This document shows, piece by piece, positions 4,101 through 49,162 of a stretch of 64,000 nucleotides of DNA. Positions within the stretch are counted from its first letter, which is position 1. Every line of letters starts with the position of its first letter. Origin of the DNA: Takakia lepidozioides (taxonomy: Eukaryota > Plantae > Bryophyta); NCBI GenBank assembly GCA_030704615.1, contig CM060731.1:69130001-69194000 (forward strand), written 5' to 3'. Under the pieces are notes generated by a model, which had not been told where the DNA came from, ran no database searches, and saw nothing but the letters and a program-made list of their open reading frames with translations. A program made the position numbers and the translations under genes.

Positions 4101-4248
4101 CAAGTGATGGAAATTATTTTGAATCATTAGATTTTACAGGATCTAACGGTCTAGATTGTTTAAGATCTAACGGTTTAAGATTACACCGCCGAACTTTACA
4201 CCGGGCTGGGACTTGGGCTTTTTTGTCTCCTGTGTTTCACCATCTATT

Positions 4249-22960: not shown

Positions 22961-23058
22961 AATGGCAATTTCAGCCCCTGAAATTGGCTATGGGTGAACC
23001 AATCATTCCCCTGCCAAATGATTTTGGATTGATTTGAAACTTTGCGAGTGTCTTGTAC

Positions 23059-23081
23059 GGGGGATGCTATTGTGTGAGCAG
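23059..23081 (+). repeat. Left TIR of MULE
   Basis: Imperfect inverted match to 49140-49162, followed by GAGCAG and GATGAATG subterminal motifs mirrored at the right end. Confidence 0.75.
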
Positions 23082-25006
23082 ATCCCACGAGCAGAAAATT
23101 GCATGAGCAGAAATCTGCTCACGCTTGAGGACCTGCCTACCTATAACCGCAGACGTCCAGTCGACTTAGAAGACCTATTACTGCGCAGAGTGGCCAGTAT
23201 CAGAAGGTCGGATATGGATGTTGCTTGGATGAATGAGGGATGAATGTCGGATGAATGTCTGTGTAACAAATGAGAGGTGGATGAATGACATAAATGAAAG
23301 ATTAGATAGTTGTTTGTAGTGGTAGCTCCCAAAAGCTCGGAGATGCATGAAACCATACTTGTCTTGCTTGAAAATCAATTATGTCGGGTGCAATGTATAT
23401 TGCAAACTTTGAGTCCACATTGCTTTGTTGATTGAGAAGGACCACATGTCATTTTCCCAGTTATACAACATTAATAGAGAGGATCACATCCAATCATGAA
23501 GAGGCAAACATGTGAACTCTTGGTTTTTAAACAAACCCTTCAAAAGAATCGATTCATTCGGACAAAGAAGATCCACTGCTACAGGACGCACTGTTCAGGA
23601 CGAAGGCAGACTGTCCACAAAGACACTAGCCCTGCTCTGCTGAAAACCATGTCTTTCGTGTAGCAGAGAAGGTGGAGATGTCAGTAGACTATACTCCTTA
23701 GCCGCAACCTCCGCATAAGCTGGCAAATGAAATTGTGCTGGAGGACTTGGAAAAAAATCCGGGTTGGCAAATAAGGGCAGAAACCATGGCATCATAGGAC
23801 TCCGTCAACCACACAGTAATGAGTAAAATTGGTAAATACTTTGGAAGCCAAACTGCAGCCAAACAAAGGAGCACCAAAAGGATCCGTCATGGGGTCTATG
23901 AGTTGCCACAAAAGAACATGCACTTACTCACATGAAAAATCCGAATCCACATCCAGAGCATCCGGCTCTTGCAGATCCTCCTCCTCAACAATCTTCTCAG
24001 TCTGGGTCGAATGCGAGGATCCCTCAGAGAGTGGAGCGATGACTCGAGAGTAAAGCTCCTCGTCCCCCTCAAACCCAAAAAGATGTCTTCCTGCACACTT
24101 GCAGGCATGGAACGAAGCCCCTATAGGATAGCGAATGAAAGCACGAAACCATGTCAGAAGCCAAAACAGGAGAGGAACATGTGCAACGAAGAATGAAGAA
24201 GAGTTTCGGCATGCACCTGTGCCCATGGAGAGGTCAACGACTTTGCCACCATGCCGGCTGCATGTCTCAATGAAGGTCTGCATGAACACGGGCGACTTCT
24301 CCCAGGCACCTCTCCATGGAATTCCTCCAGTCTTTTTCAGAGTCTAGGACGCATCCACATAGTTGTGAACAACATCAGATTCGACTGGGTCGCAATCTGG
24401 GTCTATGTGCAGACCTCCTCCCCAAATGTCGAAATGCCCAACATAAGCAGGAATGTTGGCAGGCCGAATTCATGACAGGCAAATGGCCTTGAACACATGG
24501 GTCTGCACCAGCAACAATGGAAATATGTCAGCAAGTATGGGTATTCAACGACAACACGGACGAAGACAAATGAAAGTTACAAGAAATACCTTTTGCCCTG
24601 GAAACTCCCCCTTCGACAGAGGCAGTGTATTAACACATGTCCATATTTTGTTGATTTGGAACCCAGAGGACTTCATGTAGCTATGAAGAATCCGGCGGGA
24701 TGCCATGTCGTCAGATTGAAATATCAGAAGGCCCCCTGCGTCAGAGAGGAACTTGTTGCAGAAAGAGAATGCCCACTGCCAATACAGAGGATTTTGAGCA
24801 TTCCACTGTGGAGTCACAGCAGGGGAAATGATATCAAGCATAGGCTGCCCATCCGGGATGTCAAGGATTACAAGGTCAGCGGCGTAAGGCTGCTGGACAC
24901 CGTTCACCCAGCATGGATTCTACGTCACCTGCCAAAAGCAAATGCAAGCGAATGAAATTGGGTAGTTGGTATACATTTAGGGAACTGGTAGTACAAAGCA
25001 CTGGTG

Positions 25007-26390
25007 GATTAAGATGTCGTTGACGACATCTTAATCGAGCAAATCCAAAACCCCACAATGTCATGAAATGGGAATCAAAGTTGAAAGATGCATGGGCATT
25101 ACCAGGGTGAGGAAAGAGCAGAGGTGGTCCCATGCAGGAGATTTGACCCCTGTGAATGTGGACTTCCTGGACTCCATCATACGTAGGAAGCTAACGTTTG
25201 CCGTTTCCGTTGGAACTGCGGACCCACTACTCTGGAGACGCAAAGTCGGGCTTCGTAAGGTCGTTTCCCTGCCCTGTGGTTAGTCCTTTCATCAGCTATC
25301 ACGGAAATCTGCTGGACCTCTGTACGCACAATGCGATAATCTGCCTATGGGTGATCAAGAACTGCCCCACCAGTCCCTGCAGGCCCTGACCCAGAATCAA
25401 CGGCAGCCATAGCACCGGCAGACCCACCTGCCTCCGCAGTCTGTTTCCCTTTGTTTTTCTTCTTCCCACCCGCGGGGGTGGACGTCTTTGCTGGCTCCTT
25501 CTTACTCAGCTGCGCAAGGAACCTAGCCTGCAACTCCTCATCTGTCCAGGGTGCCAAGGCATCTGCATTCTCATTCTGATTCCTCAAGACGTTCTCCTCC
25601 CACGGAGTGGACTGCCGAGGGCAATCGAGGTACCACCCGCAGTCGCTGTAATGTGCCCGACCCCAGTCCTTCACAATTCCCGCTGTGAACATGGTGGTGT
25701 CGTCGTCTGGGTTTGCCCATCCACGAATAAAGTCCGGATCATCACTGAGAGCCTTATCTGGAATAAGAACGAAGTGAAAGTACCTGCATCCACACCAGTG
25801 TTCTTACTCAAAGCATATATCCCCACAGACCACAAGAACTCACCTGTTCACTGCATATTTGCATACTACACCTTAAGATGTCATTGACGACATCTTAAAA
25901 TCCAGGAACTTGAAGAGAAATTGAAGAGATACAGAACAACAGAAAACAGACATGCTCAACTGAACTATTTCCGAGAGCCCAAAGAACAGCCATTTAAGAT
26001 GTCGTCAACGCCATCTTAAATCAACCACTAACACCATGCGGGCGAGCCCGAATCCTTTCTTCCAAAAGTCCTCGGAGTACCTGTTCCAACGCACATGGTA
26101 TTTTTTCGTTGTCTGACGAAAAATGACTTGCTGGACTACAAAAGGATGCCTATTACGACCTCTTAAATTGCAGGAAGCACAACAAAAGAATGAAGACCTG
26201 CAGATGAACAAGAAACAGATGTGCAACTGTACAGTTTTGAAGAGCCCAAAGGGCACCGATTTAAGGTGTCGTCAACGCCACCTTAAATCGACCTAGTTCA
26301 TACATCGAATTCTTTGTGTTAGTACCGAAAAATTGCTATTTGCACTACAAACAATGCCTGTTTTAAGATGTCGTCAACGACATCGTAATG
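25007..26390. repeat. Five dispersed copies of the same 30-bp palindrome (two more at 29818 and 29932)
   Basis: Copies at about 25007, 25871, 25992, 26259 and 26361, all lying between inferred exons of the accessory gene. Confidence 0.9.
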
Positions 26391-28188
26391 TAGTGCCATC
26401 AACATAAAAGGCAGTACATGTACAGAACTCGTTTCATTGCCTGCTCCCTGTTATACTGATGGTCAAAGTCCTGCGAGCGCAGTATCCCCCCTTCCTTCTC
26501 GAACTCACGGAAAAATGCATACTTCCACAGCTCTCTTCTCCATTTCTGAACGTATGACTGGAACTTGATGCTCGGAGTGGTCATTGTGATCTTGTAGTCC
26601 AGTAGTGATTTCTCAAAAGTATCTATTGCCCGCTTCTCCAGCTGCACAACCATCCGCCACATTTTGAGTTAATCAACATAAGAAACCATGTACTCATTGC
26701 TGGAATAGTCACAATGTTTTTATAGTCTCACCTAGCTCTAGAAGGTCGCTTTGTGCAACCAAGTGTCGAATGCGCAGTCGCTGACAGGTGTCACCACCCC
26801 AGTCTCAGGGTCCTTCATTGGTTTTGGGAAATTGTTTGTATCCCGGATGATTGGATCCGAGTTCCAGATTTCCAGCCACCTCACTTTTTGAGCAGGGTCA
26901 ACCATGGAAATTGAAAGGCGGTGGAGCTTTTCCTGTGTCATCTCTGGCTTAGTGGGCTTGTTCCAGTGGATCCAAACCTGCTCCAGAAACCCCTTTCCCA
27001 ATCCGGGGTCAGCGATTCGGATGTGTTTGTCGAACCCGCTCTTCAGGTTCTTCCTGCACGTATCCATGTCCGCCTTCATTTTTGCCTCCACCCCGTTTGT
27101 CGTTCTCTCATCCTCATCTGTAGTGGCGTAATACTCCAGCTTGGCTCGTTCTCCCACTTCTGCTATTTCTTGCTGTGACACACCCATGTAACCCTCGTGT
27201 CAACAAAACCAAAGCAAAAACATGACATATCCATAATTCAAGAAGAATGGCAGTCCGCACATAAACTCACCGCGTACAAGTAGTCGAGAAACACCTCCCT
27301 TGTCAGGTTGTACCAAGTCTCATTCTTCTTGATCGTTTGGCACTTTTTCAGTGTGTCCGGGGACGAGACACTGGCAAATGCTTCCAATGGCATCACTCCT
27401 ATGCTTTGCATACAAAACAAGGAATGGACTATGTTGGTGGTGACATGGGATGTCTCCGTCCCCCTGCAATGCGAACAGGTCAGTTCACAAAGTTTAAAGA
27501 TTGACAGAACAATGAAATTGGAGACAAGAAGTGGGCAAGACTCTTACTTGTTGATATCGTGCATTGCAGTTAGAAGCTGCGTGAACTTCCCCTCCGGATC
27601 GAGGACCATTGACTGAACCCGATAGTGCCACTCTTTGTTCTCCGCATACATCCTGCTGATGTACTCCATCCAGGCCACCAAATGGTGGTTGCCATCCCAG
27701 ACAAAGAGCATTTTGTTCATGTACTGGATGTGTGCTGGGTTCTGTGAAAGCTCAATCTCAAACTCCGTATTCACTTCTTTCCAAAGCGGGTCCCAACTGT
27801 CCATTACATCGAGGTCAATCAATTTCTCAGATCCCTGGAGATCAGTCAGTGACACGTAAAACACAGTCGAACCCTTCAATTACCCATGGATAAAATCCCC
27901 CTGTAGCTTCTTGATGTCGTGGTGAAGGGCAGGCCGAACTGCTGGCATAGAAATCATCCGGCACAGAGGAATGAAAAGAGTGCCGTCTTTCACTTCCATG
28001 GAGTTGATACTTTCCTCGAGTTCACCTTGGTGGTGTACATAAGAGAGTGCACCTTGGCTTCATAGTTGGCATCCACAACAACGTCCCTGTCTTCAAGAAC
28101 AACTGTTTCCTCTGCAGGCTGGCTTCCCCCGGCTTTCTTTCTCTTTTTCTGCAAAATGCAATGTGTTAGGACACACAAATCATGGCAC

Positions 28189-29385
28189 GATTAAGATGTC
28201 ATCAACGACAGCTTAATTTGCTGTTATTCCAGGGTGATTTCCCAATGTTTGAGGGTCAATGCAGTTGTAGATTAAGGTGTCGTTGACGACATCTTAATTT
28301 GTTGTAGTTCTAGAGTGTTTCAGAGTGCTTCAGTGTTTCAGAGTGATTTTCTCATGTTTTGGGTTCAATTCATTGGAGATTAAGATGTCGTCAACGACAT
28401 CTTAATCTGCTATAGTTGTAGGGTGATTTTCTCATGTTTTGAACTGAATGCAGGAGCAGATTAAGATGTCGTCAACGCCACCTTAATCTGCTGTAGTTGT
28501 AGGGTGTTTTTTGGATGTTTTATGTTGAATTCATTGGCAGATTAAGATGTCGTCAACGACAGCTTAATCGGCTGTTTTTCAAGGGTGATTTCCCCATGTT
28601 TGAGGTTCAATGCAGTGGCAGATTAAGGTCTCGTTGACGACATCTTAATCTGCTATAGTTCTAGTATGCTCCAGAGTGATTTTCTGATGTTTTGGGTTCA
28701 CATAATTGGAGATTAAGATGTCGTTAACGACATCTTAATGTGCTACAGTTGTAGGGTGTTTTTCTCATATATTGGACTGAATGCAGAAGCAGATTAAGAT
28801 GTCGTCAACGCCACCTTAATCTGCTGTAGTTGTAGGGTGTTTTTTGGATGTTGTAAGATCAATTCATTGGCAAATTAAGATGTCGTCAACGACAGCTTAA
28901 TCGGCTGTTTTCCTAGAATGATTTCCCCATGTTTGAGGTTGACTGCAGTGGCAGATTAAGCTGTTGTTGACGACAGCTTAATCTGCTGTAGTTGTAGACT
29001 GTTTCTCCCATGTTTGTTTTGATTGCAGAGGCAGATTAAGGTGTCGTTGACGACACCTTAATCTGCTGTAGTACTAGACTGTTTTGCCCATGTTTTGGGT
29101 TCAACTCATTGGTAGATTAAAATGTCGTCAACAACACCTTAATCTGCTATAGTTCTAGGGTGTTTTGCCAATATTTTGGTTCAATGGGGAGGCAGATTAA
29201 GATGTCGTCAACGACATCTTAATTTGCTATTTTTCAAGGTGATTTCCCCATTTTCGAAGTTGAATGCAGTGGCAGATTAAGCTATCGTCAACGACAGCTT
29301 AATCTGTTGTAATTCTTGGGTGTTTTCTCCATGTTTTTGATAGAACATAGGGGTAGATTAAGGTGTCGTCAACGACACCTTAATC
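28189..29385. repeat. Array of 15 x 30-bp palindromes in an about 81-bp period, inside an inferred intron
   Basis: GATTAAGVTGTCGT(CA/TG)ACGACABCTTAATC starting at 28189, 28270, 28378, 28459, 28540, 28621, 28711, 28792, 28873, 28954, 29034, 29115, 29195, 29275 and 29356. Confidence 0.95.
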
Positions 29386-31069
29386 TTCCTTCACTTTAAT
29401 CTTCCTAAGTAAACCTTTACCCGCAAAGGTGACCTTTTAGGTAGCATTATCGACACCTCAATCTAACTCCTTTATGTTGCAAAGACCATGGATTCGAATG
29501 TATGAACTAATCTTCTCTGGCTTCGTTCCTCCGCTGGAAGACCCGCCCCCCACTGCACGCCTTCTGCCTTGCACCTGACTCTTCTCCTTCACGGATTGCG
29601 GAGGCACTTGTGTGTTTTTCTCCTGCCCCTCAATGCCTGTGACCTGTCGTGGACACTGCATTATTTGCACCTCCTCCTCCTGAGCGACATGACCCTGCTC
29701 TGGCAGGGTCTGCTCTTGAACTGCAGGATCCACAGATGAGATCGGACGCTGACTCTCCCAAGCCTTCTTCCACTTTCTCTACCAAAAAACATAATGAAGG
29801 TAAGCATTGCAGGCCCAGATTAAGGTGTCGTCAACGCCATCTTAATCCTATACATATTGCAGGCTGTTGCACTCATACAGAGACAACATTGGGCTCGCTA
29901 GAACTAAGAGCTCTGCCTCTCGGAGATGGCAGATTAAGCTGTCGTCAACGACAGCTTAATCACCTTGCTCTGGACTTGTTCGAATCCCTTCCGAATGCAA
30001 TGGTGGACATGATGCGATGCCGTTTTAAGCAATCGTCAAAGTCATCTTCAACTCAAATGTATGTTTCTTACTGCTCTTCTTATCGCTTCGAGTCAGGGAA
30101 CAAAGTCATGTAAAGCCAATGTGCTGCTGAACTCACCTGGATCAAACTCTGTCCACCGCTGGAAGTGTCCTCCTCTCCCAGCCCGACGTTGCTTTCCGCT
30201 TGAGCCTTCTCCTTCAACGGGCGCAAAGACAGTTGCATGGAGGAGGGCCGCCCCCTTGTCGGCAGGCCCCTCTGCGGACTTTGCTGCGTTGCCTCCTCCT
30301 CCGCAGGATCACCGCTCTCCCTTCCGACTTCCTCCTCCTGTATCGGTTGCAATAGAGGCAGCTCCAACCGATCCTCGAGTTGCTTGTCCAGAATGGGCTC
30401 CTTCCCTGCCAGACTCTCCATCCCTTCGCCCACAGAACCCTCCCCCTCACGATCGCTCCCTCCCTCTGACAAATTCAAAGCCCTCCCAGCTTTCTTCATC
30501 CTCTCTCTCGCTCTCAATCTCTGCCTAGCAGACGTGAAGTACAGAGACTGCCTTCTCGCTCTCTTCTTTCTGGAAACGCTCTCGTTCTTGGGATGCTCCA
30601 ATGTGGCGAGTCTGAAATGATGAACGCCAGAATGTAACCTCCAAAGACATCCCTCGGGCAAATGACAAAAATCGATGGCGGTTAGGTTTTCATCCCTCCC
30701 TCTCAAGGAATGACTAATCATCCAAAAACGTAACGGCTCATAATTGGGGTTTTCATTTTTCGGCGGGATGCTTGCGGGCTGTCTCGTAGAGAACTCGACA
30801 CCTGTTGCCCTTGCAAGACACTTAAATATAGGCATGTCACGTATCCATGTTAGACATAAGGGGTTCGACCCACACCGCAGTCACTGAGGATGTGGCATCT
30901 GCAAGTCGGCCGCAATTCTTGCATGTCAGAATCATGTGTCCGGCGGTCTATGATATGACATTCATGGGATAAAATTCAGCAGTATCTGTCAGAGTCAAAG
31001 CCGACTACTAAACAACATGCAAAGAAATAATTTGCCTCAGCACCTTCACTCGGTGGATCCACTGAGACA

Positions 31070-34000
31070 TTGTCAGGAAATGGTTCCACGAATTCGGCCT
31101 TCCTGGTGTACTCTTGTCACCTGCTCTCCATTGCCCACACTCCCGTGCTCGTTCATGCAATGTCTCTCAACTCCGACGTCGCTGTTTTCTACTCCAACGC
31201 GCAAGCGGAGTACCTGAGTGCAGTAGCCGACGTGAATGGGCTCGCCGTAGTTCAAGAAGACTTGCTTTGCGTGACCTTTTGCTTTGAGGCAGGGACTATA
31301 CATGTAGTGAGAGAGGTGTATGACAAAGTGGGTAAGGTCAAGGGCACATGCGTTCAGAAACCACATTTGTCTGGCAGTCGGCGAGAGTGGAGAGTTCCAC
31401 CAGCAAAGTATCGCGTTCATGGGGATCAAAGACGTCTGTCGGGAGGTTCCATAGTCACGTCCAGAACAGCAGCTTCGGTGGCTCAGGTGCCCAAAACTCT
31501 GCCCATCAAAAGAGAAGAGACAACCTCCACCACATTTGTTGATATCTCCTATAGCTCAGAAGAGGACGTGTCGGAGCTCCCACCTCCTCCGAATCAACGT
31601 CTGTTGGGGGACCCCGATGTGCAAGAAATTGCAAGTGCCATACCGAAGTTGCAGTCCTTGAGGGGGTTGCCAGGATACAAGAGTGATGTGAGAGGCATTG
31701 ACTGGGATACACAGCGAATCGTTAGAGCAAAATACCTACCCAATGAATTTAACGGTGATATCATTTTTGAGCTGCCACCAGCGACATCCTCTGGGGGATT
31801 GGCAGGACGAATGGCGGGCATGGACAAGAAGCACGATGGACATCCATGGTGTCGGACAAAAACTTCCAATATATGCAATCCGCATGGCTTGAAGTTCCGT
31901 AGGTCGATTTGCGTTGGACACATTCGTTGTCCAAATGCATTTTGCCAGCAATTCCAAATGGACGGTTCGGCAAACGAGACAGAATGGGAAGGTGTCAACG
32001 ACAACCCTTTCAAAGTAGGTTGTGCTCCTGCAAGCAGTAGTACTCTTGTTTGCAATATCTGTAAATTGGTCCCACGGTGCATCGCAGATTGCAATGCACG
32101 TATGTACTACGTGCTTCACAATTGCAGTTACCTCACAAAGGCATGTATCCATATCGGCATTCATGCACATCCGGTGTCCCGAGGACAGTGCAGAGAGACA
32201 ATTGATACAGTCCGTTCACTGCTTCAACACGAAATTCATAGTGCTCCTGGTGCATCGCCATCAGCCATTGCTCTGGCAACAAGCAAAGGATTCCTACAAA
32301 AGTATTTGTTTGGGGAATCGCCGGAGTCCACCACTAAATTTGACACTGCCTCCCTTGACGATGTTCTGGACCATTTCTCAACATTCAGTTCTCCGAATGT
32401 GCGAAATCAAATCAACGTCCTAAGGGGGGGTGCTGCCAACACAGGCTTTATGGATAGCATCCTGGAGTTAAAACGTATAAGCCGATATGAATTCATCAGG
32501 ACAGTGTTTTCCCGGGGCAAGGTGCCAGGAAAGTGTACTTATTCAAGATGTCCACAGTTGGTGAGGGATCGGGAGTTAGTCTTGTGCGAAGAATGCAGCC
32601 TGGTGGTGATCTTCACAAATCCTGGGTTATGTTTGATCACGTGAAACGTGTGAAGGAATGGATGACCATGGCCTATCATGTATACGATCCTGCATACCTG
32701 AGAGTGATGACTGTTGCTATTTGTGACATGCAATCAGATGACACAGAGTCACAAATTCTTATGTGGAAGTCCCTTGTTAACGTCGTGACAGCTCATGGTG
32801 TCCCAGATCCAAACTTCACTGGGTTCATGGCTGACAGTGCTCAAGCGAATTGGAATGCTGTCCGTACAGTTTTTGGTTCAAGCGACCCCGAAGTACCAAT
32901 GGAAGGCCGGGAACGCACTTGCCTCTTTCATTGGAGCCAGTCCCTACAACGCCACACAAAAAGTTCCATAAAACTGGAGTTGCGGGAGGAGCATATGAGA
33001 CTATGCCGTTTGTATAAAGATGCCACCTCCCGAACAGGAAGCCAACTCTATGTTCCAGACTATTCGAGAATGGTGGTACACATCTGAGGCAGCCAGTCTG
33101 GATGGAATCAAAGAACTGGAAGGCTGGTTGGGGTTCTGGCACTTCAAATATAGATAGTGGGGTGCCTTCATGACAACTGTAAGTTATTAGCGAATTAGCA
33201 TGATTTTCCTTTATTCCTTCTCGTCGGAAGATATATCATGGAACGAACAGGCCCTCCAATCCAGTTCTTATGTTGCTGTACGTAATCATGCTTGTGTTGA
33301 ATTGCATGCAGAACATGTCACTGGAGGACATTGCCGATATGCCCTCCTGCAATCTAGCGGAGACTGTGCATAGTCAGTGGATAGCACAATCCGGCAAAAA
33401 AGGGAGGAACCTCTACGTTGCGACTGCAGATGACATGCCGGGCTGTTTCGCAACAAACAAGGTACCGAGACTTCCTGAGGGGAGGGGGAGCTGGCAAAGG
33501 TCCAGACAGGGAAGAGTTGCTACTCAGGGCTGCAAAATGGCGCGTGCTGTGAATGAGTTCACAAATGGAACACCTTTGCAGTCCAGGCTCCCACATCTGG
33601 AAGGGGAGGAAAGATTCGGTTCATGCAAGCGCAAACTTGACACCCCCACCGGATCCGCTGGTGGCTCCCATCGGCATGACAGGATAATTACTCAATTCCT
33701 TGTGTGCCTGTGCGGCCTCCGACATTCGAATCTGGCAATCCCTCTGTCGGCGCCTGTTCTTCTGCTGTATAGAATGCTTCATATCCCTCTGCTCCAGTGC
33801 GGGGAGAGGGAGAGATGATGCTGGCGGTGGAAGAGTCCGATTGTGTGGATGCAATATGGCACATTGAACGGACAGCCCAAGGATCAAAAGTTGGGTGTTC
33901 TGCACTTAGGGCATTGTCCTTTGTGAAATTCACCAGCAAGATTTCTAGGGGCGGAGGTGGGACTCTTGCCCCGTCTTTCACTGGTTTATTCAGACATTAC

Positions 34001-34414
34001 GGTGCGCGAGAGTCCAGGCCTCACAAGTTCTGGTTTTGCCCTGATGACATTCAGCGTTGTGTGATGGGGACTTGCAGGGATTCAGTCCTCAGCAAGCCTC
34101 AAATTCCAGCCGTGTGGCCAGTGAAGTTGGGAACATGTCTGTCGAAGCAAGAAATTGAGATGTTGGAGGATGCCAAGTTTCGTCTTCCAAGAGGCCCAGT
34201 AGTCATAACACCAGTTTCATGTCGGGGTTCGCAATCCGCATTCCCCCCACATCCACCATATGGGAACGACTGGCCTACAAAACGAAATGGAAACCGGTCC
34301 GTCGTGTTGAGGCAGGTCCCAAAAATGATTGCAAAATTGAGTCAGCAAGAAACCTGCAGTGTCGGAGGACCCAAGTTGTTAATGTCCCCCCTCCAGGCTA
34401 TGGGCGGGTGTACA
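31070..34414 (+). pseudogene. MULE transposase, 5' part (GCM/WRKY-like Zn domain + DDE core); frameshifted, intron 33179-33311
   Basis: HPWCRTKTSN..RRSICVGHIRCPNAFC..CNIC..CNARMYY..IHIGIHAHP; WVMFDHVKR (D1); FMADSAQANWNAVRTVF (D2); RTCLFHWSQSL (CxxH); SCNLAETVHSQW (E). Confidence 0.8.
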
Positions 34415-35330
34415 TGTTAGAGGGCTGCTTGGGACTTAGACGCTTTTATGGGTTCTGTGGGGTACCCTTAATTTTGCGCAGACTGAGACAACAGGAGCCT
34501 TAGGGGTGGCAGCAGGCAGGCTTTAGGGGGTATACAGCCTGACACAGCCCGACACAGCTTTACACAGCCAGTCATAGCCAGTCACAGACCGCCACAGCTT
34601 CGCACAGCCCGACACAGCCCGAAATAGCTTTACACAGCCAGTCATAGCCAGTCACAGCCAGTCATAGCCAGTCACAGCCAGTCACAGCTCGGCACAGCTT
34701 GACACAGCCTGTCACAGTACATGGGGAACAGTTATCATTGACAGGGAATGACTGTGAGGGAACGACATCTGAAGAGGGAACGTGTTACTCAGGGATGACG
34801 GTTAGTTAGTTAGGTGGTTAGAACAGTTTGCGGGCAGATAAGGAGAGCGGCAACGGAAAGAGGATGACTTCACGGGGAGCGCTTTTGGGTCATGGGAAGA
34901 GGAGATCAGGCGGAGGGCAAGAACGAGAGCACAGAGAAGGAGGAAAGATGAACAGTAGATGCTTATTACATGCAGAGCTGTAGTGATACTGTAGGGCGGA
35001 TTAGAGTCACCATGGCATTGGCCTGATACCTGATAAATCATAATCTGATATTTATTCGATACAATCACACTGTGTAGAGAGACATGAGTGAAGCTGTGAA
35101 ATGAATGCATGATAACTGGAACTAAGTAGATACTGAAGCGTATCAAAAAGGTTAAATTGATAACATGAAGGCAAGAAGGAATACAAATGGGAAGCACAAC
35201 CATGATTCACTAGCTGCAGGTATGACTCTGATAGTACTGGCGGGCTGAGTGCTTAGAGATATCCAACTCTTCATCTTGGAGTTTCCACCTCGGATTAGCG
35301 AAGGGATGGGTGAGTAAAAGCCGTTCGACA
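34415..35330 (+). repeat. 5' LTR copy A, containing 10-bp CACAGCC-type tandem repeats
   Basis: TG..CA boundaries; homologous to 46446-47389 and 55023-55975. Confidence 0.95.
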
Positions 35331-35350
35331 TTGGCGAACCATACTGGGAC
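35331..35350 (+). promoter_or_regulatory. Primer binding site (tRNA-Arg-like)
   Basis: TTGGCGAACCATACTGGGAC directly after the LTR; copy B has TGGCGACCATACTGGGGA at 55978-55995. Confidence 0.65.
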
Positions 35351-35938
35351 CTGGGTCATGAACAACCAGATGTGACAGGCATCTGGTAGGATCATGGTGG
35401 TTGGAGAATTAAAGAATATTATGTGAATCAAATTCCCTGTGAAACTGAGAAGGAAAGATTGTCCAAACAATTCTTTCAGGGGTTTCTGAATTGCCAGACG
35501 GTTGTAAGGAAAACATTCTTAAGAGAGTGCATGATGCTGACCCTGAGTGCGGTCTGGAGAAAGGAGTGATAAGATTTATCAAGTGGCCAGTAGAGGAAGA
35601 GCACGTTGGTTACCAACACTGGTTTATGTGATAGCGTTGCTATCCATTAAGCGAGTAGAGTAGAGTTGATGAGGCTGGGAGGAAAGGAAGGTGAATGTTT
35701 ATACTCATATGCATTGAAGAGCTTGTACTGGTAAAGAATTGGATTCCACAAGGATATTCTGTGGATCAAACCACACCAAGAACAGCTTTCCAGACTGTTT
35801 GCCATATGGTTATATGGTAACGGAGATTCTAGTATAGCCAAGGTGCATTGAAGCTTGAAAGAAACCCAGGCACATACACGAGAGATACTACAAAAGAGAG
35901 TTTTGTTATTGCCATTAAAGAAATGAAAGACATGGGAC

Positions 35939-38900: not shown

Positions 38901-41900
38901 GCTACCCTGTTCGCTGCACACCCAGAGTGGGAGCAGGTTGCAGAGATGCAGCTGGAAGGCCTAAGTTGTTTAAAAGGTATCTGTTGTGGTGTAGTGACAC
39001 AACACCAATTGAAGGTGAAACAAGCAGTTACCCACCACATTTCTATGAAGAAAGAGAGGGAGAAATGGAAATCCTAGAGGAACCAGCCACTGTGAGTTTA
39101 CAGGATGAAGTGGTGACTGGTTGGACAATCACAGCTGAGCAGGTGAGAGAAGTGAATGTGGGAACTGAAGAGGAACCGAGGATGGTGAAGGTAGGGGCTG
39201 ATTTGGAGCCAGAATTCTTTGAGGAAGCTAAGAGTTTGTTCATCAAATACAGAGATGTATTTGCTTGGAGCTACGAGGATCTAAAAGGGATACCACCTGA
39301 GATCTGTCAGCATAAGATTGAACTGGAACCAGGGTCAGTACCAATCAAACAGGCAAGGTACAGAATGAATCCCAACTATGCACAGAAGGTTGGAGAAGAG
39401 ATCAAGAAGTTGGCTGAGGCTAAGTTTATATACCCGATAGAGTATACAACTTGGTTGTCACCCATTGTGATAGTTCCCAAGAAGAATGGTAAACTGAGAG
39501 TGACACTATAAGAAGTTGAATGCTTGCACGAAGAAAGATCATTTCCCCTTGCCATTCACAGAAGCGGTATTGGACACTGTGGCAGGCCATGAGATGTACT
39601 CATTCATGGATGGCTTCAGTGGTTATAATCAAGTGCAAGTGGCAGAAGAAGACCAGGGAAAGACAGCTTTCATCACAGACTGGGGTGCTTATGCATACAA
39701 AGTCATGCCTTTTGGACTTTGTAATGCACCAGCAACCTTTCAGAGAGTGATAAGTGAATCTTTTCATGAGTATCTGGATGATTTCATGCAGGTGTTCTTG
39801 GATGATTTCAGTGTGTACAGCTCTAAGAATGAGCACTTGCATAAATTGGAGTTATGTTTGGCCAGATGCAGGATGAGAGGTCTGGGCCTGAATCCAGAGA
39901 AGTGTACTTTTGTGTGAACTCAGGGGTGCTTTTGGGACACATTGTGTGTAAGAGGGGACTTCTTGTGGATCCCAGGAAGACAGAGGCCATTAAAGCCTCT
40001 CCACCACTAGTAAATGTTAAGAGTCTAAGGAGATTCCTTGGACAAACCAGTTATTACAGAAGATTTGTCAAAAGGTATGCACAGATAGCAGCACCATTGA
40101 GCAAGCTTCTGAAGAAAGATGCAGTGTTTGCATGGACAGCTGAATGTCAACAGGCTTTTGAGGAACTTACATTGTCAGTAACAACTACACCTGTGCTGAT
40201 TAACCCTCACTGGCATGTAGTATTTCATGTTCACTGTGATGCCTCAGGGGAAGCGTTGGGAGCGGTGTTAGCCCAAAATGTTACAGGAAATATAGATTCA
40301 CCTGTGTACTATGCTAGCAGGTTGATGAACAGTGCTGAAAGGAACTATAGCACAACTGAAAGAGAAGCACTGGCAATGATTTATGCAGTCAAGAAATTCA
40401 GGCATTACCTATTGGGAAGAAAGTTTATGTTTTATGTGGATCACCAGGCTCTGATATATCTGGTGAACAAACCTTTGATAAGTGGAAGGATAGCAAGGTG
40501 GTTAATAATCTTGCACGAGTTTGAGTTCGAAGTTGTTTACAAGCCTGGCCGTTTGCATCTTGTGGCAGATCATTTGTCACGCCTAACAACAGGAGAGCCC
40601 GCCACAGGAGTAGACGACCAATTACCTGATGCGAGTTTATTTGCAATGGAGGTGCAGGGAAGTGCAGATGAATGGTTAGATTGGCAGTGGCCAATCAGAT
40701 ACTACCTTACTCATGGTCAGTGCCCACCTAGTTATGGTAAGGAGCAGAGGAAGAGAATCGCTATCAAGGCTTTACCTTATACTATGGTAGGGGGCAGAAT
40801 GTATAAGCTAGGACCTGATGGAGTACTTAAACGATGCTTGTACCACCATGAAGTAAATAAAGTTTTGGAGGAAGTTCATAAAGGAGTGGCTGGAGGTCAT
40901 TTTGGAGAAGAGACTACCAGTAGGAAGATACTACTTGCAGGTTACTGGTGGCCTACTTTGTTCAAAGATGTACACAAGTATTGTCAGAGTTGTGATGAAT
41001 GTCAGAGGCTAGGACCTTTGCAGAGATCTGGGAAGATGGCTTTGCATCCTACGATGCCTACTGAACCAAGTTACTGATTATACTACGAAGTGGGTGGAAG
41101 CTAAAGCTCTGAGGGACAACACAGCCAAGTCCACAGCAAGGTTCCTGTATGAGAACATACTTACACGATTTGGCTGTCCCCTGGAATTTATCAGTGACCA
41201 GGGAAGTCACTTCATTAATGAGACCATTGAACTATTGACTAAAGAGTTCATGATTGTGCATAGGAAGAGTACAACATATTACCCACAGGGTAATGGGCAG
41301 GCAGAGGCTACCAACAAAATACTATGTACTATCTTGGCTAAGATAGTCAATGCAAACAGAACGGATTGGGATACAAAGCTGCTGACAGCTTTGTGGTCAT
41401 ACATGACTTCATATAAAGTCACCACTAAGTATACACCATTCCAATTAGTTTATGGTATGGAAGCTTTACTTCCAGTGGAATTCTTGTTACCTACCATGAG
41501 AACTGAATGGGGAAAGAGAATGGAATTGAAGATTCAATTAAGGTCAGGAAACATGAATTATACCATGTGGAAGAAGTACGTGCTGATGCAGCTGATAACA
41601 TGACCAGAATTCAGATGAAGAGGAAGGAACAGTTTGATGAAGGCAAATTAAAGACTTTTAAGACGAGAGATTTGGTTCTCTGGTTGCAGAAGAAGGGGAA
41701 GATTAAAGCTTCTAAGCTTAAATCACCATGGAAAGGACCTTATGTCATACAGAAGATGTATGATAACAACACCGCCATGTTACAAACCATTAACAAAGAG
41801 ATGCTGGGAAGAGTCAATGCCAATAAGTTGAAGGGGTACAGTGGTATCCATGACAAACCATTGCAGCACGATTTGCATGTTGAAACGCAAAAGCAGTCAC

Positions 41901-42055
41901 GGGCTGCGCCAGTGATACCAACGGAGTATGGAGCACTTGTCGTTAAGCCGAGCGTGTATGACCAAGGCGGGAAGTACAAGTGTCACACAACCTATCACAA
42001 CCCATCACATTGTCACACAGCCTATCACAGCCCATCACAGCCCATCACAGCGTGA
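35939..42055 (+). pseudogene. gag-pol: gag-pol of copy A (frameshifted)
   Basis: Three CCHC knuckles; PR LIDGGSG; RT FMDGFSGYNQ, MPFGLCNAPATFQR, FLDDF; RH CDAS..YSTTEREAL; IN GGHFG..CDECQR, SDQGSHF, YPQGNGQAE, WKGPY. Confidence 0.93.
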
Positions 42056-42657
42056 CACAGCCTATCACAGCCCACCACAGTGCCACACAGCCTGTCACAG
42101 CCCAACACACCCATACAGATTACACAGTCCATAGGGTCAGTGACAGGTGGACGCGAATTAACGTTAGAAAAGTGGCCATCAAGTGAAGAGGAAGTTTGGA
42201 AGTCAAACTTGGAGAATATGCACGCGGAGAGGGGAAGTCGGGGCATGTTTTGAAACAGACACGTGGCCACTAAGGCGTGGCACACCGCACTGCATCAATT
42301 GCAAAAAAAGGTCTCATCATGCAAACGGACAAATCGGGCCGTCAAAGTACCTACCCGGTACAGCAGCTAATACTAATTGTGGGCCCATTAATGCATTCAG
42401 TGTAAGGGTAACGGAACCAACCTATGCCACATGTGCTGTCCTACTGGACATTCCAGGTGGGAATGTCCATGGAGGGGGGTGGAATTAAGAAATTACCTAA
42501 GCAGTCCACAGCCAATCAGGAGTGCGAATTACATGCAGGTGGTTCCCTCCAAGAAACAAGAACAAGAAATAGGAAGTGTTATGAGCGGAAGAGTCGGGGT
42601 GGCTCTGAATAGCCAAGGTCTCGACGGAAGGGGCAATCAAAGCACTAGTTTGTAGCT

Positions 42658-45600
42658 ATGGCAGATGTAACGGATTACACACTCGCTTTACTTCTCACGC
42701 AGTGGCGCAAGGACGGAAGCATTGAGAGTACATTTTCTCTCACTCGATACTTGCAAGCCCCACAGGCTTACACGCACTTACCTGTTCCATTCTGTGCCAA
42801 CCATACCTTCATGCTCTGTGCCCTGCAAGCTTTCCTTCAGCTGTTTCAAACAAAGCCTTTTTGTTTGTCTAGAATGAAGAGAGTGAGGGGAATGGAGGAT
42901 ATCAGGGTGAAGAGCACCACGATTCTGCAGAAGCAAACAATTGCAGCACCGCAGGCAGTACAGCTGCTAAGGGAGTTGCGATTGGAGGGGCTGCTACGCA
43001 AGGACTGGTCCTTGCATCATCGGCAGTATATGATTCAATTTCTTCAGAACTTTGAGCCTCGGACGGGAGTTACTCAGGTGAGGGGAGTAGATATAGAAAT
43101 TACTCCCCAGTACCTGCAGCAATTGTTTGATTTGCCATCAGGTCATGTGGATGTGGATGAGCACAGGGCAAGATTGCAGATAGGGAATTTGTTCCAAGAA
43201 GGGAGTTTCTTTAAAACTCAAGGTTACGCTTGTACCAAAGCCGAGTACCCAGGGCTTAGGGAAGTTGGCCAAATATTGAACGTTCTGTTTGCCATGAAAC
43301 AGAACCAACAGTATTTGAGCAGGTCATTCACAGAGGAGATCCTGAAAGCTTTGAGGGGAGAGGATGTCGCTTGGGCGGAGTTAATGTACAATGGACTGGT
43401 GGACGAGATGAAGAGGTTACAGGGCACTGCTGCTAAGTCTCCGATCATTGTGTCTGGTCCAGTCATTGCCCAAATAATTCTTGATTCTTGCATACTTGAT
43501 ACTCGGGAACGTAAGGAGATGGGAGTGTTTGAGGCAGAAACCACTGCAATTGAAGAGCAGGGCTCTTCACACAGTGAGGGTGGACTGGCAGGGCAACACC
43601 AGTCTAAGAGACAGAGGCGGGGTATGACTGTAGTGGCGGATCCACTGGCTTCACGGAAACCGCACGATGATGTTTCCCAAGCTCTTGTGCAGGATGGGGC
43701 ACAGCAGCACAGAAGGCTGTTATTATTGGAAGCACGGCCTTCGGAGAGGGAAGAGGAAGTCAATTTGATACCACAGCCACCACAACCAATTGACTCAGTT
43801 GTTTTAGAGGTTCCACAGTTAGTACATGCTGTGACATCACCCCCAATTGCTCTGGAAGGAGAAAGGTTGGACATTCCCACTACAGAGCAGGTCGTGGCCG
43901 AAATTGAGAAGGGTGACCTTCTCTATGAAAACTCTGGCTTGGTAAGGGAATCAGTGGTTCCAGAGGTGCAGCGGTTGTCCAGGGAAAACCCTGCTGTGCA
44001 TGTAATACCCACACCTGTGATGGAGGTACCAGGGGTAGAATATCAAGACACTGCAGCACCTGTGGAGGATGAGGTGGTTCAGGAAGAGAATCTGGTGGGG
44101 CAATGGCCTGAATGGTTGGTGAGGCATCACACTGTGGAGGATCAGGGAGAACAGCAGCAAGTTCACCATGATGACCCTCAGCAGGCCATGCTTATGAGTT
44201 CCATAAGCAGAACACTTAATTTGTTGGGCACTTATGTGAAATCCCATGTTCCATCTACCCAATTGGCAGCTTTGAGGGAGGAACTCAGAAGGAGTTTGAG
44301 GCTCGAATTGCCACTGATGTGCTAACAAGGTAGATGAGGAGGTCAATCTCAAGTTACAGCAAGAGTTGGAGGACACAAAGGCTGCTTTGCAGTTGGCCAA
44401 GGGACATTTGATTGAAGCAGGCCTCGAGCAGGACCAGTTGCATGAAGCACATAAGCAACAGTTATACCAAATGCAGGTGAAGCATGAGGACAAGTTGCAA
44501 GAAGTGAATGTACTACATACAGAGTTGCAGGCAGTACATGAGAAGATGACCATACAATGTGCTACACTCACAACTACTCTTGAGCAAACTGCATTAGAAG
44601 TTAACAGACAAGGGGAGAGATGTATGAAGGCAGAAGCAGAGATAATAGAGCAAGCGAAACTCATTGTTGATATGAAGAATACAATCTGTCGCAATGAGAA
44701 TACTTTCAAACAATACAGACAGGTTGAGGCTGACCAGGAGAGGTACATCCTGGAGTTGCAACAAACAGTCATGGTCAATAGAAATGAACTCTCTGTGGCT
44801 AACAAGGCTTGGAAGGAAGCCAATAATCTGGCTGCTGCCTATGCGAGTCTGGTTGAACCTCATGCAAAACGCATGGAGGCTTTACAGCAGCAGTTAGATG
44901 TGTACAGACTCACGGAGGAGCAGACTCTCAGGGGTGCCACACACGACTTGGTGGATAACCACCTTATGCAGGTCTGGTTAGCACAAGGGCCGGTGGAAGG
45001 CAAAGCACCACGGAAGCTCACCCAGGGCGAGATGAATGAGCTCAGACTGCAGGTGCAGAACATTGCCACAACTACTATAGACAATGTCTATAGTAGGATA
45101 GCGGAGCTACAGGAGGATGTAGAAGGCCTGCAGACTCAGGTGGATGACCTGAGTTCAAATATTGACAAGAGAGTCTTTGTACCTGAGGAGCAGCTGATGG
45201 CTACTTATTTACATGCCAGGACTCTAATTTTTCAGTCTTCTTCGCAAGGGGTGTAGGCGATGCCAGTGGTAGAAGGGCCAGTGGTACCAATACCACAGCA
45301 AGTGATTGTGCAGGTAGCTGACCCTGTTGTTACTACAGCCACACCACAGCCTGAGGTATGGGGGGATGCTGCTTTTAACCCACCTAAGACTCCTGCTGCA
45401 CGGGAGTACAGTCGGACTATGATTATGCCCTTCAACCAAATTCCCATTGTGTTGGATTTGGCTTGGAAGGAATTTAGTCCTCCGCAATCGTTGGCACATT
45501 ACTACCAGATCATGCGCATTTGGCTGCCAGTGGCAACTAGGACTAAGGTTCTTCCGAACAATCGACCCATTGAGGATCATCACTTTGCGAGGTACTGGTC

Positions 45601-46406
45601 TGAAGCAGCTACCATGTTGAAGGAATTAATTGCCTTCCAAGTTGTACATGGGTACATTTATACCAAGACCAAGGAGGTATCAAGTATTGTCATGGGATGT
45701 GGATTATACTATGCTGCTTGTTTTCTGGCACGTTATCACATTGAGCAGCAGAGGATGCAATCCCGATTTCTGAGTTATTCCAGTGGGGATCATTGGGTCT
45801 TACCTTCAGTGCCACCTCATATGTACCTATATGATGCAGAAGGATTCCCAACTTCGTTCATGGTTTCATTCGGCTTGGAACAATTTGACAACACAGAAAT
45901 TCGGCCCTGAGGATATTTTCTTTAAGGGACATGAGGCATGGAAATACTTACACTGTTCCAAAGTCATCGGCACACCTCTTACCTATACAGATAAGGAGTT
46001 GAGGACGTTCACTAATTTTGCTTGTCAGCGCTTACAGCAAGTTGTACAATTTAAACTTCCAGATATGGTCGGACCACATTGTATGCCACACAGGATTCCA
46101 CTTAAAGTTTGGCCGTTAAAACACCTAAGGGGAGACGAGGATTCTCATACTACTGTTTCTTCAGCGGACTCTTTTGACATGGCAGAGGACTATGCACTTC
46201 AGATGGCAGAGAAGAAACGACGGGGATCTCCTATGCCTGAGAGGTTACCTCGTTATCAGCCAAAGGAGGGTCAGACATTTCCAGGTAGTGCTCAATCATC
46301 TCCATCAACCAATGACAGGACTCAGGCTCGCACACGGAGTCCTTCACGAGACTCTCACCGTCAGAAGGGTGCTCGCTCACAAAGGTTTGCTAATCCCAAA
46401 CAGTAA
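42658..46406 (+). CDS. Extra sense ORF(s) between pol and the 3' LTR: Athila-like plant transposon domain, acidic linker, coiled coil
   Basis: ORFs 42658-44325, 44366-45256 and 45260-45910 are in the same frame, separated by single stops; 45783-46406 follows. Motif IQFLQNF..QVRGVDIEITPQYLQQLFDLP..VAWAELMY. Heptad-rich segment at 44270-45170. Confidence 0.6.
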
Positions 46407-46427
46407 ACCGTTAGGACACGGCTTTTT

Positions 46428-46441
46428 GAGAGGGGGAGGGG
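46428..46441 (+). promoter_or_regulatory. Polypurine tract
   Basis: GAGAGGGGGAGGGG, 4 nt before the 3' LTR. Confidence 0.85.
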
Positions 46442-46445
46442 TAAA

Positions 46446-47389
46446 TGTTAGAGGGCTGCTTGGGACTTAGACGCTTTTACGGGTTCTATGGGGTACCCTT
46501 AATTTTTGCGCAGACTGAGACCAATATGAGCCTTAGGGGTGGCAGCAGCAGGCTTTAGGGGGGTTATACAGCCCGACACAGCCTGACACAGCTTTACACA
46601 GCCAGTCACAGCCAGTCACAGCCCGCCACAGCTTCGCACAGCCCGATACAACCCGACACAACCAGTCACAGCCCGATACAGCTTCGCACAGTCAGTCACA
46701 GCCCGACACAGCCTTACACAGCCAGTCACAGCTCGGCACAACTTGACACAGCCTGTCACAGTACATGGGGAACAGTTATCATTGACAGCGAACGACTGTG
46801 AGGGAACGACATCTGCAGAGGGAACGTGTTACTTCAGGGATGACGGTTAGTTAGTTAGGTGGCTAGAACAGCTTGCGGGCAGATAAGGAGAGCGGCAACG
46901 GAAAGAGGATGACTTCACGGGGAGCGCTTCTGGGTCATGGGAAGAGGAGATCAGGCGGGGGCAAGAACAAGAGCACAGGGAAGGAGGAAAGATGAACAGT
47001 AGATGCTTATTACATGCAGAGCTATAGTGATATTGTAGGGCGGATTAGAGTCACCATGGCATTGGCCTGATACCTGATAAATCATAATCTGATACTTATT
47101 CGATACAATTACACTGTGTAGAGAGACATGAGTGAAGCTGTGAAATGAATGCATGATTAACTGGAACTAAGTAGATACTGAAGCAATCTGATGCTTCAGT
47201 ATCAGATAAGGTAAATTGATAACATAAAGGCAAGAAGGAATACAGATGGGAAGCACAACCATGATTCACTAGCTGCAGGTCATGACTGATAGTACTGAGC
47301 GGGCTGAGTGCTTAGAGATATCCAACTCTTCTATCTTGGAGTTTCCACCTCGGATAGCGAAGGGATGGGTGAGTAAAAGCCGTTCGACA
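46446..47389 (+). repeat. 3' LTR copy A
   Basis: TG..CA boundaries, followed by TSD GTACA. Confidence 0.95.
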
Positions 47390-47394
47390 GTACA

Positions 47395-47662
47395 GTATGG
47401 TGACATCGGGTTCTGTTGTTCACGACATGACTTATGAGGTAACTGTTGGCAATTTTCCAAATTGCACATGCCCGGACTTCCAGAACACTTTATCAAGCTC
47501 TATTGGAAAGAAACCCAAATTTGTCCGTGCAAACACCTATACTACATCTACATTCACAGGATGTTTTGTGATCCTCACCGAGACACGTGCATTCACCAGT
47601 GTACAATGGGTCCCACTGACATTCATACACTTCTGCAGCGTGATAGGATTACTGAAATGTGA
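47395..47662 (+). pseudogene. MULE transposase 3' end with SWIM zinc finger
   Basis: YEVTVGNFPNCTCPDF...CPCKHLYYIY. Joins in frame to PPGYGRVY (34414) when the LTR element and one TSD copy are removed. Confidence 0.85.
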
Positions 47663-47792
47663 GGTGTTCAGAAGGAGTTGGATTCTTTGACAATGACTCC
47701 ACTTTGTTCAATGTAATGTTTTTAACATGTTCTATTTCTGTTTTGGCTGAATCTGTTTTCGGTTTGTTTGTTTTGGGGTTGGTGGTTTTTCC

Positions 47793-48491
47793 AATTAAGA
47801 TGTCGTTGACGACACCTTAATCCACCCACCTGCACACGCACTGCCTTCGTACCTTTGTTGGATTCATATATTTTGGGCTATTTGGGTTTTTGGATGAATT
47901 GAAATGTCGCAAAATGTGGTGGGAAATAAGATGTCGTTGACGACACCTTAATTCCTCCAACGTGCACATGCACCGCCGTGAAAGTTTTGTTCAGGTGGTC
48001 GGAATTAAGATGTCGTTGACGACATCTTAATCCCCCCGACCTGCACACGCACCGCCTTCAAAATTCTGTTGAGGTTGTTGGAATTAAGATCTCGTTGACG
48101 ACACCTTAATCCCCCCTGCACACGCACCGCCTACAAAGCTTTTCTGGATTCATTTTTTTCTGGTTTTTTGGGTTTTTCCATGAACTGTCGTATCGCAACA
48201 GGTTGTGGGAATTAAGATGTCGTTGACGACACCTTAATCGCCGTGACCTGCACACGCACCGCCTTCAAAGTTTTGTTGGATTTCTGTTTTTTCTTTTTTT
48301 GGGCCATAATCTGAAAAGACATGTGGCAGCAACTGGTGGGATTTAAGATGTCATTGACGTTGATGTGTTTTGCACAGGTGTTGGCTTTGTAGTTTTGTTG
48401 GATTCAAATTTTCTGGTTTTTTGGGATTTTCCATGAAATGTTTGTGGCAACAGGAGGTGGGAATTAAGATGTCGTTGACGACACCTTAATC
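47793..48491. repeat. Second cluster of 7 copies of the 30-bp palindrome, downstream of the transposase
   Basis: AATTAAGATGTCGTTGACGACAYCTTAATC at about 47793, 47924, 48003, 48082, 48210, 48341 (partial) and 48462. Most copies are followed by CTGCACACGCACCGCC-like sequence. Confidence 0.93.
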
Positions 48492-49139
48492 CCCCCCCCC
48501 CTCCCCCCCACCTAGACACACACCGCCTTCAATGTTTTTTGGACTCAATTTTTTGGGTTCATTGTTTTTGGAGAAATGTTTCTGCGATTTGGTTTTGTTC
48601 TCCACTTCTCATGTTCTATCCTCCTCCCTCCTCTGCAGCCCCACTCCCATCAGAAGAGTCCATAGGTAACTCAAATTTACTCCTGTATGTAATTGCCTTC
48701 TAACTTCAGCAGTTTCCTTCAAGTCCCCTCAAAGTAAGTACTGCCAGGATCAGCCGACAAATCTGAAATTCATGACACACTCGAGATGCAATTGCTCCAC
48801 GTGAAACAAAAACGAGGTCATGGTTCATCCATTTCGCTCATTTCTCATCCAACAGTCATCCACCATTCATCGTTTCCACTTTTCATTCATCCTGAAACCA
48901 TTCATCCGTCGGCTTTTTCATCGCACATTCGTACCATACGGTCGTCATGGAGCTTGGATTGTCCCGTCGGATGGGGTGTGCATGCGTCCGTGCATTGTAG
49001 TTTTTTTCCACGGCAATAGGCCCTCTTTTTCCCTCAGTTGTAGGCTCCCATTCACTAATCTGCTCAAGCTTTGAATCTGCTTACGCTTTAGGGATTCTGC
49101 TCATGTTTTCCACTTTAAGCATGAGCGTGCTCACGTGAG

Positions 49140-49162
49140 CTGCTCACACGGTAGCTGCCCTC
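49140..49162 (-). repeat. Right TIR of MULE
   Basis: CTGCTCACACGGTAGCTGCCCTC, directly followed by the TSD. Confidence 0.75.

Follow-up and report, generated by a model that had tools for sequence, protein, structure and literature searches.

A decayed Mutator-type transposon of Takakia lepidozioides with a divergent gene for a predicted ParB-fold, methylase-like protein and arrays of its own palindrome

We have analysed a 64,000-nucleotide stretch of Takakia lepidozioides DNA (assembly GCA_030704615.1, contig CM060731.1, positions 69,130,001 to 69,194,000 of the forward strand), referred to throughout as the window, in which overall repeat-rich eukaryotic DNA holds one large DNA transposon of the Mutator type at 23059-49162. 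The element encodes a transposase on the plus strand and, divergently on the minus strand, an intron-containing accessory gene with ParB-like and methylase-like parts, and it contains arrays of a palindrome of its own. It is bounded by two identical 10-bp copies of a target-site duplication, TGTCTTGTAC, read directly at 23049-23058 and 49163-49172, a length within the 9-11 bp of Mutator and Mutator-like elements (MULEs). Like these elements it ends in terminal inverted repeats, found by local alignment of the left end (23059-23120, plus strand) with the reverse complement of the right end (49100-49162, minus strand, read from the sequence), and the repeats are imperfect, with ∼18 of the first 23 bases in agreement. 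Subterminal clusters of GAGCAG (left) and CTGCTC (right) accompany them, four copies in the first 60 bp and three in the last 100 bp, with 0.3 expected per 400 bp. A Ty3/gypsy-type long terminal repeat (LTR) retrotransposon that is not part of the Mutator system is nested at 34415-47389, and the host element measures ∼13.1 kb after its subtraction. Combined with the results given below, this indicates that the sequence at 23059-49162 is probably an old, dead copy of a high-copy MULE-type transposon with two divergent genes and its own repeat arrays.

The transposase gene persists as a pseudogene in two parts. Plus-strand open reading frames (ORFs) at 31184-34291, located by tblastn with the proteins P0001 and P0002 and by tblastx with locus L001, match P0001, a metagenomic protein of 698 residues, at 49% identity, and do so only across frameshifts near 32500, 33032, 33437, 33534 and ∼33800. 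Similarity to the transposase of a related locus, L003, picks up again in tblastx at 47385-47644, immediately after the nested insertion, and because this homology resumes directly behind it, the retrotransposon must have inserted within the transposase gene. The last part of the pseudogene (47395-47644, plus strand) corresponds in translation to a SWIM zinc finger which, though decayed, retains CTCPDF; in the L003 homologue the finger is recognised as PF04434 at 21.2 bits, against a Pfam cut-off of 19.6. The closest protein-feature clusters of the transposase are MULE/ZSWIM families (0.93). The 10-bp duplication, these neighbours, the SWIM finger and the CTCPDF remnant together support membership of the Mutator group, the MULE domain itself being a candidate.

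On the minus strand, the first coding exon of the accessory gene, with an acidic N-terminus and a ParB/sulfiredoxin (Srx)-fold domain, was placed at 27548-28150 by homologue alignment and predicted structure. Middle exons follow within 25100-27463, in blocks at ∼27271-27463, 26726-27190, 26408-26650, 25474-25785 and 25100-25207, placed by GT-AG sites and by tblastx with L003, L004, L005, L006 and L007. The next exon (24590-24919), delimited by 101 homologues and its splice sites, carries the N-terminal half of the methylase-like domain, with DIPDG instead of DPPY as motif IV, and is followed by an exon with PWRG..EK and motif I, GGKVVDLSMGTG (24217-24343). A 96-nt GT-AG intron (24121-24216) lies right after motif I, and the last exons (23673-24120), aligned with P0094, L006 and L007, encode the motif II region (GRHLFGFEGD) and an acidic C-terminal tail. 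Exon order is the same across L003, L004, L005, L006 and L007, all exon junctions that were read are GT-AG, and the position of intron 24216-24121 is shared with L007, L006 and P0020. Contigs of two runs of the same organism, X6 and X7, whose RNA label is a guess, join exactly across this intron and so represent the spliced form, and gene model P0097 holds both the ParB-like and the methylase-like parts. Because exon order is conserved, the introns are GT-AG, P0097 spans both parts and a spliced form occurs in X6 and X7, the ParB-like and N4/N6 methylase-type domains appear to belong to one protein encoded by one spliced gene.

The first coding exon (∼28150-27548) has 440 homologues in public assemblies, among which two motifs, P[MLV]VRP and DGNHR, are near-invariant, DGNHR being present in 115 of 123 sequences. 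DGNHR constitutes a GxxR phosphate-binding motif that is kept family-wide and reads DGNHH, an Arg-to-His change, in the window copy. An AlphaFold2 model of P0003, a member of the family of window 27548-28059, reached a pLDDT of 84.8 with an alignment of 98 sequences; an earlier fold from six sequences had a pLDDT of 47 and was discarded as useless, a confident model being obtained only after the alignment was deepened to 98. The top Foldseek rows for this model are almost all ParB, Noc, sulfiredoxin, PadC, SerK, SbnI and KorB, at weak E-values of 0.09 or worse. Alignment by VIA-align with the CTP-binding N-domain of Caulobacter ParB (7bm8_A) gave a Z of 8.8 and a root-mean-square deviation of 2.1 Å over 94 residues, and 55 chains matched at a Z of at least 5, the best of them CTP-binding N-domains of ParB, Noc and KorB. 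When the ESM Atlas was searched by shape, it returned the clusters DUF3723, ParB_N, DndB and DUF1015. Sub-threshold Pfam matches were to DUF1015 in 10 of 98 members (best E 0.002), DndB (0.032) and DUF6551 (0.18), which we take to be families of the ParB clan. Sequence and profile searches of PDB chains with this exon gave rows at chance level only. From the predicted structure and its alignments, assignment of the first exon to the ParB/Srx fold is sound.

The exon at 24919-24590 has 101 homologues, the longer of which (P0094, P0020, P0087 and others) extend into the regions of window 24343-24217 and 24120-23927. Hhalign aligned the first half of the domain with residues 28-88 of Escherichia coli YhdJ (probability 69.6%, E 4e-5; motifs IV-VI), placing DLIIxDIPEG of the family opposite DLIFADPPYN, and the second half with residues 196-258 (probability 85.5%, E 6e-6; motifs X-I-II), placing PREKD...GDIVVD..TG...GRHLxALE opposite PTQKP...GDIVLDPFAGS...GRKFIGIE. 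YhdJ is a beta-class N6/N4 (adenine) methylase, and the two halves match it colinearly, motifs IV-VIII preceding X, I and II, with the glutamate of motif II (ALE/FE) retained. The best Pfam score of the family for N6_N4_Mtase (PF01555) is the weak match of P0094, 15.7 bits against a cut-off of 26.7; the window exons have no N6_N4_Mtase match in Pfam, and sequence and profile searches of PDB chains with the methylase exon returned chance-level rows only. Matches to P0013 and P0101 in the representative search were discarded as bacterial repeat proteins matching by chance. Because of the two colinear YhdJ alignments and the weak P0094 match, we trace the C-terminal domain, by sequence comparison, to the beta-class N6/N4 DNA methylases.

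The core of the palindrome, 22 bp in length (AAGATGTCGTYRACGACATCTT), is present in 28 copies at up to three mismatches, 0 being expected from shuffles. All copies lie within 25011-29957 or 47797-48487, with none in the nested element and none outside the transposon in the window. Five (at 25011, 25875, 25996, 26263 and 26365, spanning 25011-26386) are situated in two introns of the accessory gene, as judged from exons placed by tblastx with L003. The main array, 15 palindromes with an 81-bp period (28193-29381), sits directly 5' of the ParB exon, upstream of the coding exons and outside the introns, two further copies lie between the divergent genes (29822-29957), and six are found 3' of the transposase gene (47797-48487), where L003 has palindromes of its own.

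A preliminary description of this DNA, made from its letters without database searches, had proposed a Mutator-like element with a 10-bp target-site duplication and short imperfect inverted repeats, a transposase gene, a divergently oriented, intron-containing gene with ParB/Srx-like motifs and about 29 copies of a 30-bp palindrome private to the element within the window. This anatomy is borne out: the boundaries by the identical TGTCTTGTAC pair and the end match, the Mutator-like class by the duplication length, the SWIM finger of the homologue and the MULE neighbours, the transposase by tblastn and tblastx, the accessory gene by its GT-AG introns and conserved exon order, and the palindromes by the 28 cores. 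The ParB/Srx likeness holds as a fold, through the AlphaFold2 model and VIA-align, and not by a Pfam threshold.

The divergent pair of transposase and ParB-methylase-like genes is also found at four loci that come from other samples or assemblies, L002, L003, L005 and L007. L003 has its own 28-bp palindrome, ATCAACCTTGCGTYAACGCAAGGTTGAT, in at least nine copies, which lie upstream of the ParB exon, 3' of the transposase and in an intron whose homologue in the window is the spacer at 26402-25803. L007 has ∼50 copies of a 139-bp unit, distributed over two introns and the DNA upstream of the ParB exon, and each unit contains a 35-bp imperfect palindrome peculiar to L007. Three lineages thus each have their own, different palindrome in comparable places. 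That the place of the array is kept and its sequence replaced is the pattern expected from a protein and a cis site changing together, for which the arrays offer circumstantial evidence. A search for the GAGCAG end motif of the window element near the ends of L005 and L007 was negative. The linkage of transposase, accessory gene and private repeats set out in the preliminary description is supported by these four loci, L003 and L007 having their own palindromes, L002 a few, and L005, like L014, tandem arrays but no long palindrome. Its claim of motifs resembling a beta-class methylase likewise stands for the layout, given the YhdJ alignments, and replacement of the catalytic DPPY across the family counts against the deposition of N4-methylcytosine (4mC) or N6-methyladenine (6mA) that it envisaged.

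Repeat spacing shows regularities of its own. The 81-bp period recurs with three unrelated palindromes, at window 28193-29381, at 6845-6999 of L002 and at window 62301-62516, and L005 and L007 have a 138/139-bp period in common. There may be a constraint on spacing, such as protein phasing or nucleosomes. The third of these 81-bp arrays is part of a second, different palindrome family (GGATGGAAATTCGGC / GCCGAATTTCCATCC) at 62301-63060, adjoining a truncated second copy of the LTR retrotransposon; in an HMM scan of all ORFs of the window, nothing coding for the ParB, methylase or transposase parts of the family turned up next to it.

The window copy is a relic, both of its genes being disabled, a point absent from the preliminary description. 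Its ParB exon contains a TAA stop (27880-27882) and a 1-bp deletion near 28008, and its transposase is frameshifted and split by the nested insertion. A DNA run from this organism yielded 1695 contigs with a match to the stretch of at least 80%; contigs over the two sites have G at 27880, giving a Tyr codon as in the family, and most have an extra G at 28008. The number of matching contigs and the bases at 27880 and 28008 indicate that the family is high-copy and that other copies are without the stop and the deletion. No RNA run contains the window copy exactly. In the 27190-26726 block, which has a good GTGAGA donor at its end, an in-frame TAG (26738-26740) precedes this donor by six bases, and L003 homology continues past the stop codon; this TAG is possibly a further disabling mutation. 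The family is suited to direct tests, since it is high-copy, has copies free of the stop and deletion, and occurs in a spliced form in the organism.

The anatomy of the element is well supported; the mechanism is what we infer. The family probably encodes a MULE/SWIM transposase and a divergent accessory protein consisting of a ParB/Srx fold, a middle part and a methylase-derived C-terminus. The putative cis sites of this protein would be the repeat arrays, which are placed in the introns of the accessory gene, 5' of that gene and 3' of the transposase. By analogy with ParB, KorB and Noc on their sites, the accessory protein would gather on copies of its own subfamily and change the state of the element, either through a mark, should the methylase be functional, or simply through being bound there. 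This would probably serve escape from silencing or regulation of the element's two promoters.

Several observations weigh against this interpretation. The pairing of duplication and inverted ends is not reproduced on a second full copy, the L014 element extending beyond its locus. Pfam recognises none of the three domains at its thresholds in the window exons or intact homologues, the SWIM finger of the L003 homologue excepted: the MULE catalytic domain PF10551 has no match in window ORFs or intact homologues and is recognised by its protein-feature neighbours only, and the ParB exon has no superfamily match at threshold and no ParB_N match. The middle part of the protein (P0094 residues 1-235) has no match in a protein-feature search, and Pfam scans of all exons and homologues detected no HTH_ParB or other DNA-reading domain. 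Since no helix-turn-helix (HTH), no C-terminal dimerisation domain in the protein and no ParA-like gene in the element was found, membership of canonical ParB (ParABS) is not supported. In the methylase-like domain, the catalytic (D/N/S)PP(Y/F/W) is replaced family-wide by D-[ILV]-P-[ED]-[GN], DIPDG in the window copy, with neither the second proline nor the aromatic residue present, and motif I has few glycines, being reduced to D-x-x-A-x-T-G against FxGxG. Because motif IV is altered in the whole family and motif I is poor in glycine, the sequences make catalysis by an ordinary amino-methylase mechanism doubtful. With respect to the arrays, the palindromes of L002 number only two or three, spaced at an 81-bp period, and L005 and L014 have tandem arrays between the genes that contain no long palindrome.

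The arrays could be unrelated to the accessory protein, being subterminal or internal satellites that serve as transposase or host-factor sites, as sources of hairpin small RNAs, or simply as easily expanding repeats, in which case the ParB-methylase-like protein would have a role away from the arrays, for instance in countering host silencing at large. The six palindromes 3' of the transposase, distant from the accessory gene, are in keeping with this, as are the two related lineages with arrays free of long palindromes and the failure of Pfam and protein-feature searches to identify a DNA-reading domain in the accessory protein. However, the GAGCAG motifs at the extreme ends are better candidates for transposase sites, and a position next to or inside the accessory gene is kept between lineages in which the sequence itself has been replaced. 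Inverted-repeat arrays, moreover, also accompany an unrelated ParB-containing gene in the red-algal Plavaka elements (10.1101/2025.02.11.637652). We therefore regard unrelated arrays as an unlikely explanation and prefer recognition of the arrays by the accessory protein.

The protein might be an active N6-adenine or N4-cytosine methylase, aimed by the ParB-like part, that puts 6mA or 4mC on the element. The colinear similarity to YhdJ, including motif X, motif I and the acidic residue of motif II, is consistent with activity, and the altered motif IV is itself conserved, which suggests that the site matters and is under selection. In essentially all members, however, the replacement of motif IV described above has removed the aromatic residue, against which the flipped base is stacked in amino-methylases. 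The motif is retained in those eukaryotic enzymes of this type that are proven, for example as TSPPY in Marchantia DN4MT1 (10.1101/2021.02.12.428880), and the best N6_N4_Mtase score of the family falls below the cut-off. An active methylase is thus improbable in our judgement, and the family-wide loss of DPPY is a warning against annotating such genes as active 4mC/6mA methylases. That the ParB-fold domain is instead a nuclease or NTPase aiding transposition, for example by cleavage, synapsis or copy choice, with the methylase-like part as a structural or DNA-clamping module, is very unlikely. In its favour, the ParB/Srx fold occurs in certain nucleases and kinases as well as in clamps, the structural matches include SerK, SbnI and sulfiredoxin, there is the sub-threshold DndB match, and DGNHR resembles the DGQHR motif of DndB-type proteins. 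Against it, ParB, Noc and KorB, with their CTP-binding N-domains, match best in structure, and we know of no need for such a helper in Mutator transposition in other families.

The surroundings of these genes contain further repeats. The nested retrotransposon (34415-47389, plus strand), delimited by self-comparison, has LTRs at ∼34415-35330 and 46446-47389 that are 91% identical, start with TG and end with CA; a 5-bp duplication, GTACA, flanks it at 34410-34414 and 47390-47394, and ORFs between the LTRs encode aspartic protease, reverse transcriptase-RNase H and integrase domains. A second, truncated copy is present at 55023-62235, the two being ∼92% alike, and arrays of ACAGCCNGNC with a 10-bp period occur in the LTRs and interior of the nested element (34534-34717, 41986-42118 and 46568-46761). 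Upstream of the transposon, an ORF at 22735-23037 that by eye resembles a hAT-type transposase fragment, and has no match in Pfam, stops 12 bp before the Mutator insertion site; the Mutator element may have inserted into another transposon. Further upstream, two inverted repeat pairs, 95-96% identical (3487-4498 with 21599-22615, and 6690-7803 with 18439-19552), enclose ∼15 kb and may derive from one large duplication in inverted orientation or mark the two ends of a further big element. An Rfam scan of the window identified no RNA family.

The hypothesis of a ParB-methylase that binds or marks its own element is already in print, having been put forward, and left untested, for the Ectocarpus Sola1 transposon (PMC12477816) and for red-algal Plavaka (10.1101/2025.02.11.637652). 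In the part of the Ectocarpus source used here, a 1104-residue protein encoded opposite the Sola1 transposase is described as having ParB-like and N4C/N6A-type methylase domains, and binding and modification of its own element are proposed, its function being untested there (PMC12477816). The resemblance extends to a large DNA transposon, a gene on the strand opposite the transposase and both domains in one protein, and opposite-strand carriage of a ParB-methylase gene inside a DNA transposon, as in the alga, is found in the window, L002, L003, L005 and L007. Unlike Sola1, the carrier described here is Mutator-like and has repeat arrays, none being reported in that part of the source, and the two are likened by description and not by sequence (PMC12477816). 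In Plavaka, PAG3 combines ParB with a 2-oxoglutarate (2OG) oxygenase and has tandem inverted-repeat arrays beside its gene, PAG2 combines an N6A methylase with SET, and homologues occur on Mutator elements of Chondrus crispus, self-binding being proposed by the authors (10.1101/2025.02.11.637652). Shared features, again compared by description, are the giant DNA transposon, the ParB-domain protein, the inverted-repeat arrays beside its gene, a methylase among the accessory genes and Mutator carriers; in contrast, ParB and methylase-like parts are in one protein here and in two separate proteins there.

With bacterial and phage ParB, KorB and Noc, the family has in common the N-terminal fold, the GxxR motif and clustered palindromic sites, as well as the methylase fusion, ParB-N6_N4 (PF01555-type) methylase fusions being common in phages (PMC12704722). 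It differs in that no HTH, dimerisation domain, ParA or Pfam ParB_N match was found, in its sites of 30 bp rather than 16 bp, in its eukaryotic, spliced gene and in its altered methylase motif IV. Among named families, the one closest to the ParB-fold exon, in protein features (0.96) and in predicted shape (TM 0.53 over 127 residues) alike, is DUF3723, which fungal Starships have as a conserved accessory gene (10.1101/2021.12.13.472469), and it too is found in large mobile elements. There is no sequence-level match of the ParB exon to PF12520, the DUF3723 profile; the Starship carrier, unlike ours, is a tyrosine-recombinase element, and we know of no methylase part in DUF3723. The link is therefore a lead to candidate homology, and from this likeness the N-terminal part of DUF3723 may be a ParB/Srx fold too. 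Taken furthest, the ParB-fold domain would act as a DNA clamp that requires a nucleotide, loads at private palindromes and then spreads along the copy, each subfamily evolving its own site, as a eukaryotic counterpart of ParB-parS, with the same module in DUF3723 and PAG3. We give this extended proposal little likelihood; if true, the clamp would be a widespread 'self-recognition' device of large eukaryotic mobile elements.

Four points are new here: the fusion is borne by a Mutator element that also contains the arrays, palindromes differ between lineages although their places are conserved, the catalytic motif is altered throughout the family, and DUF3723 of Starships may be linked structurally. 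Proteins that recognise the DNA of the transposon encoding them are known from very few elements, and VANDAL/VANC of Arabidopsis is the tested case. By analogy, that system likewise consists of a Mutator-family element and an accessory protein thought to recognise short repeats in the element's non-coding DNA in a subfamily-specific manner (10.1101/2025.02.11.637652). The likeness is one of analogy only, VANC, unlike what is considered here, causing methylation loss. To our knowledge VANC has no ParB or methylase domain. If the proposed reading is true, a ParB-fold protein with private, fast-changing palindromes would represent a second, independent solution beside VANC, one in which a DNA-loading module of the bacterial partition type has been brought into eukaryotic chromatin.

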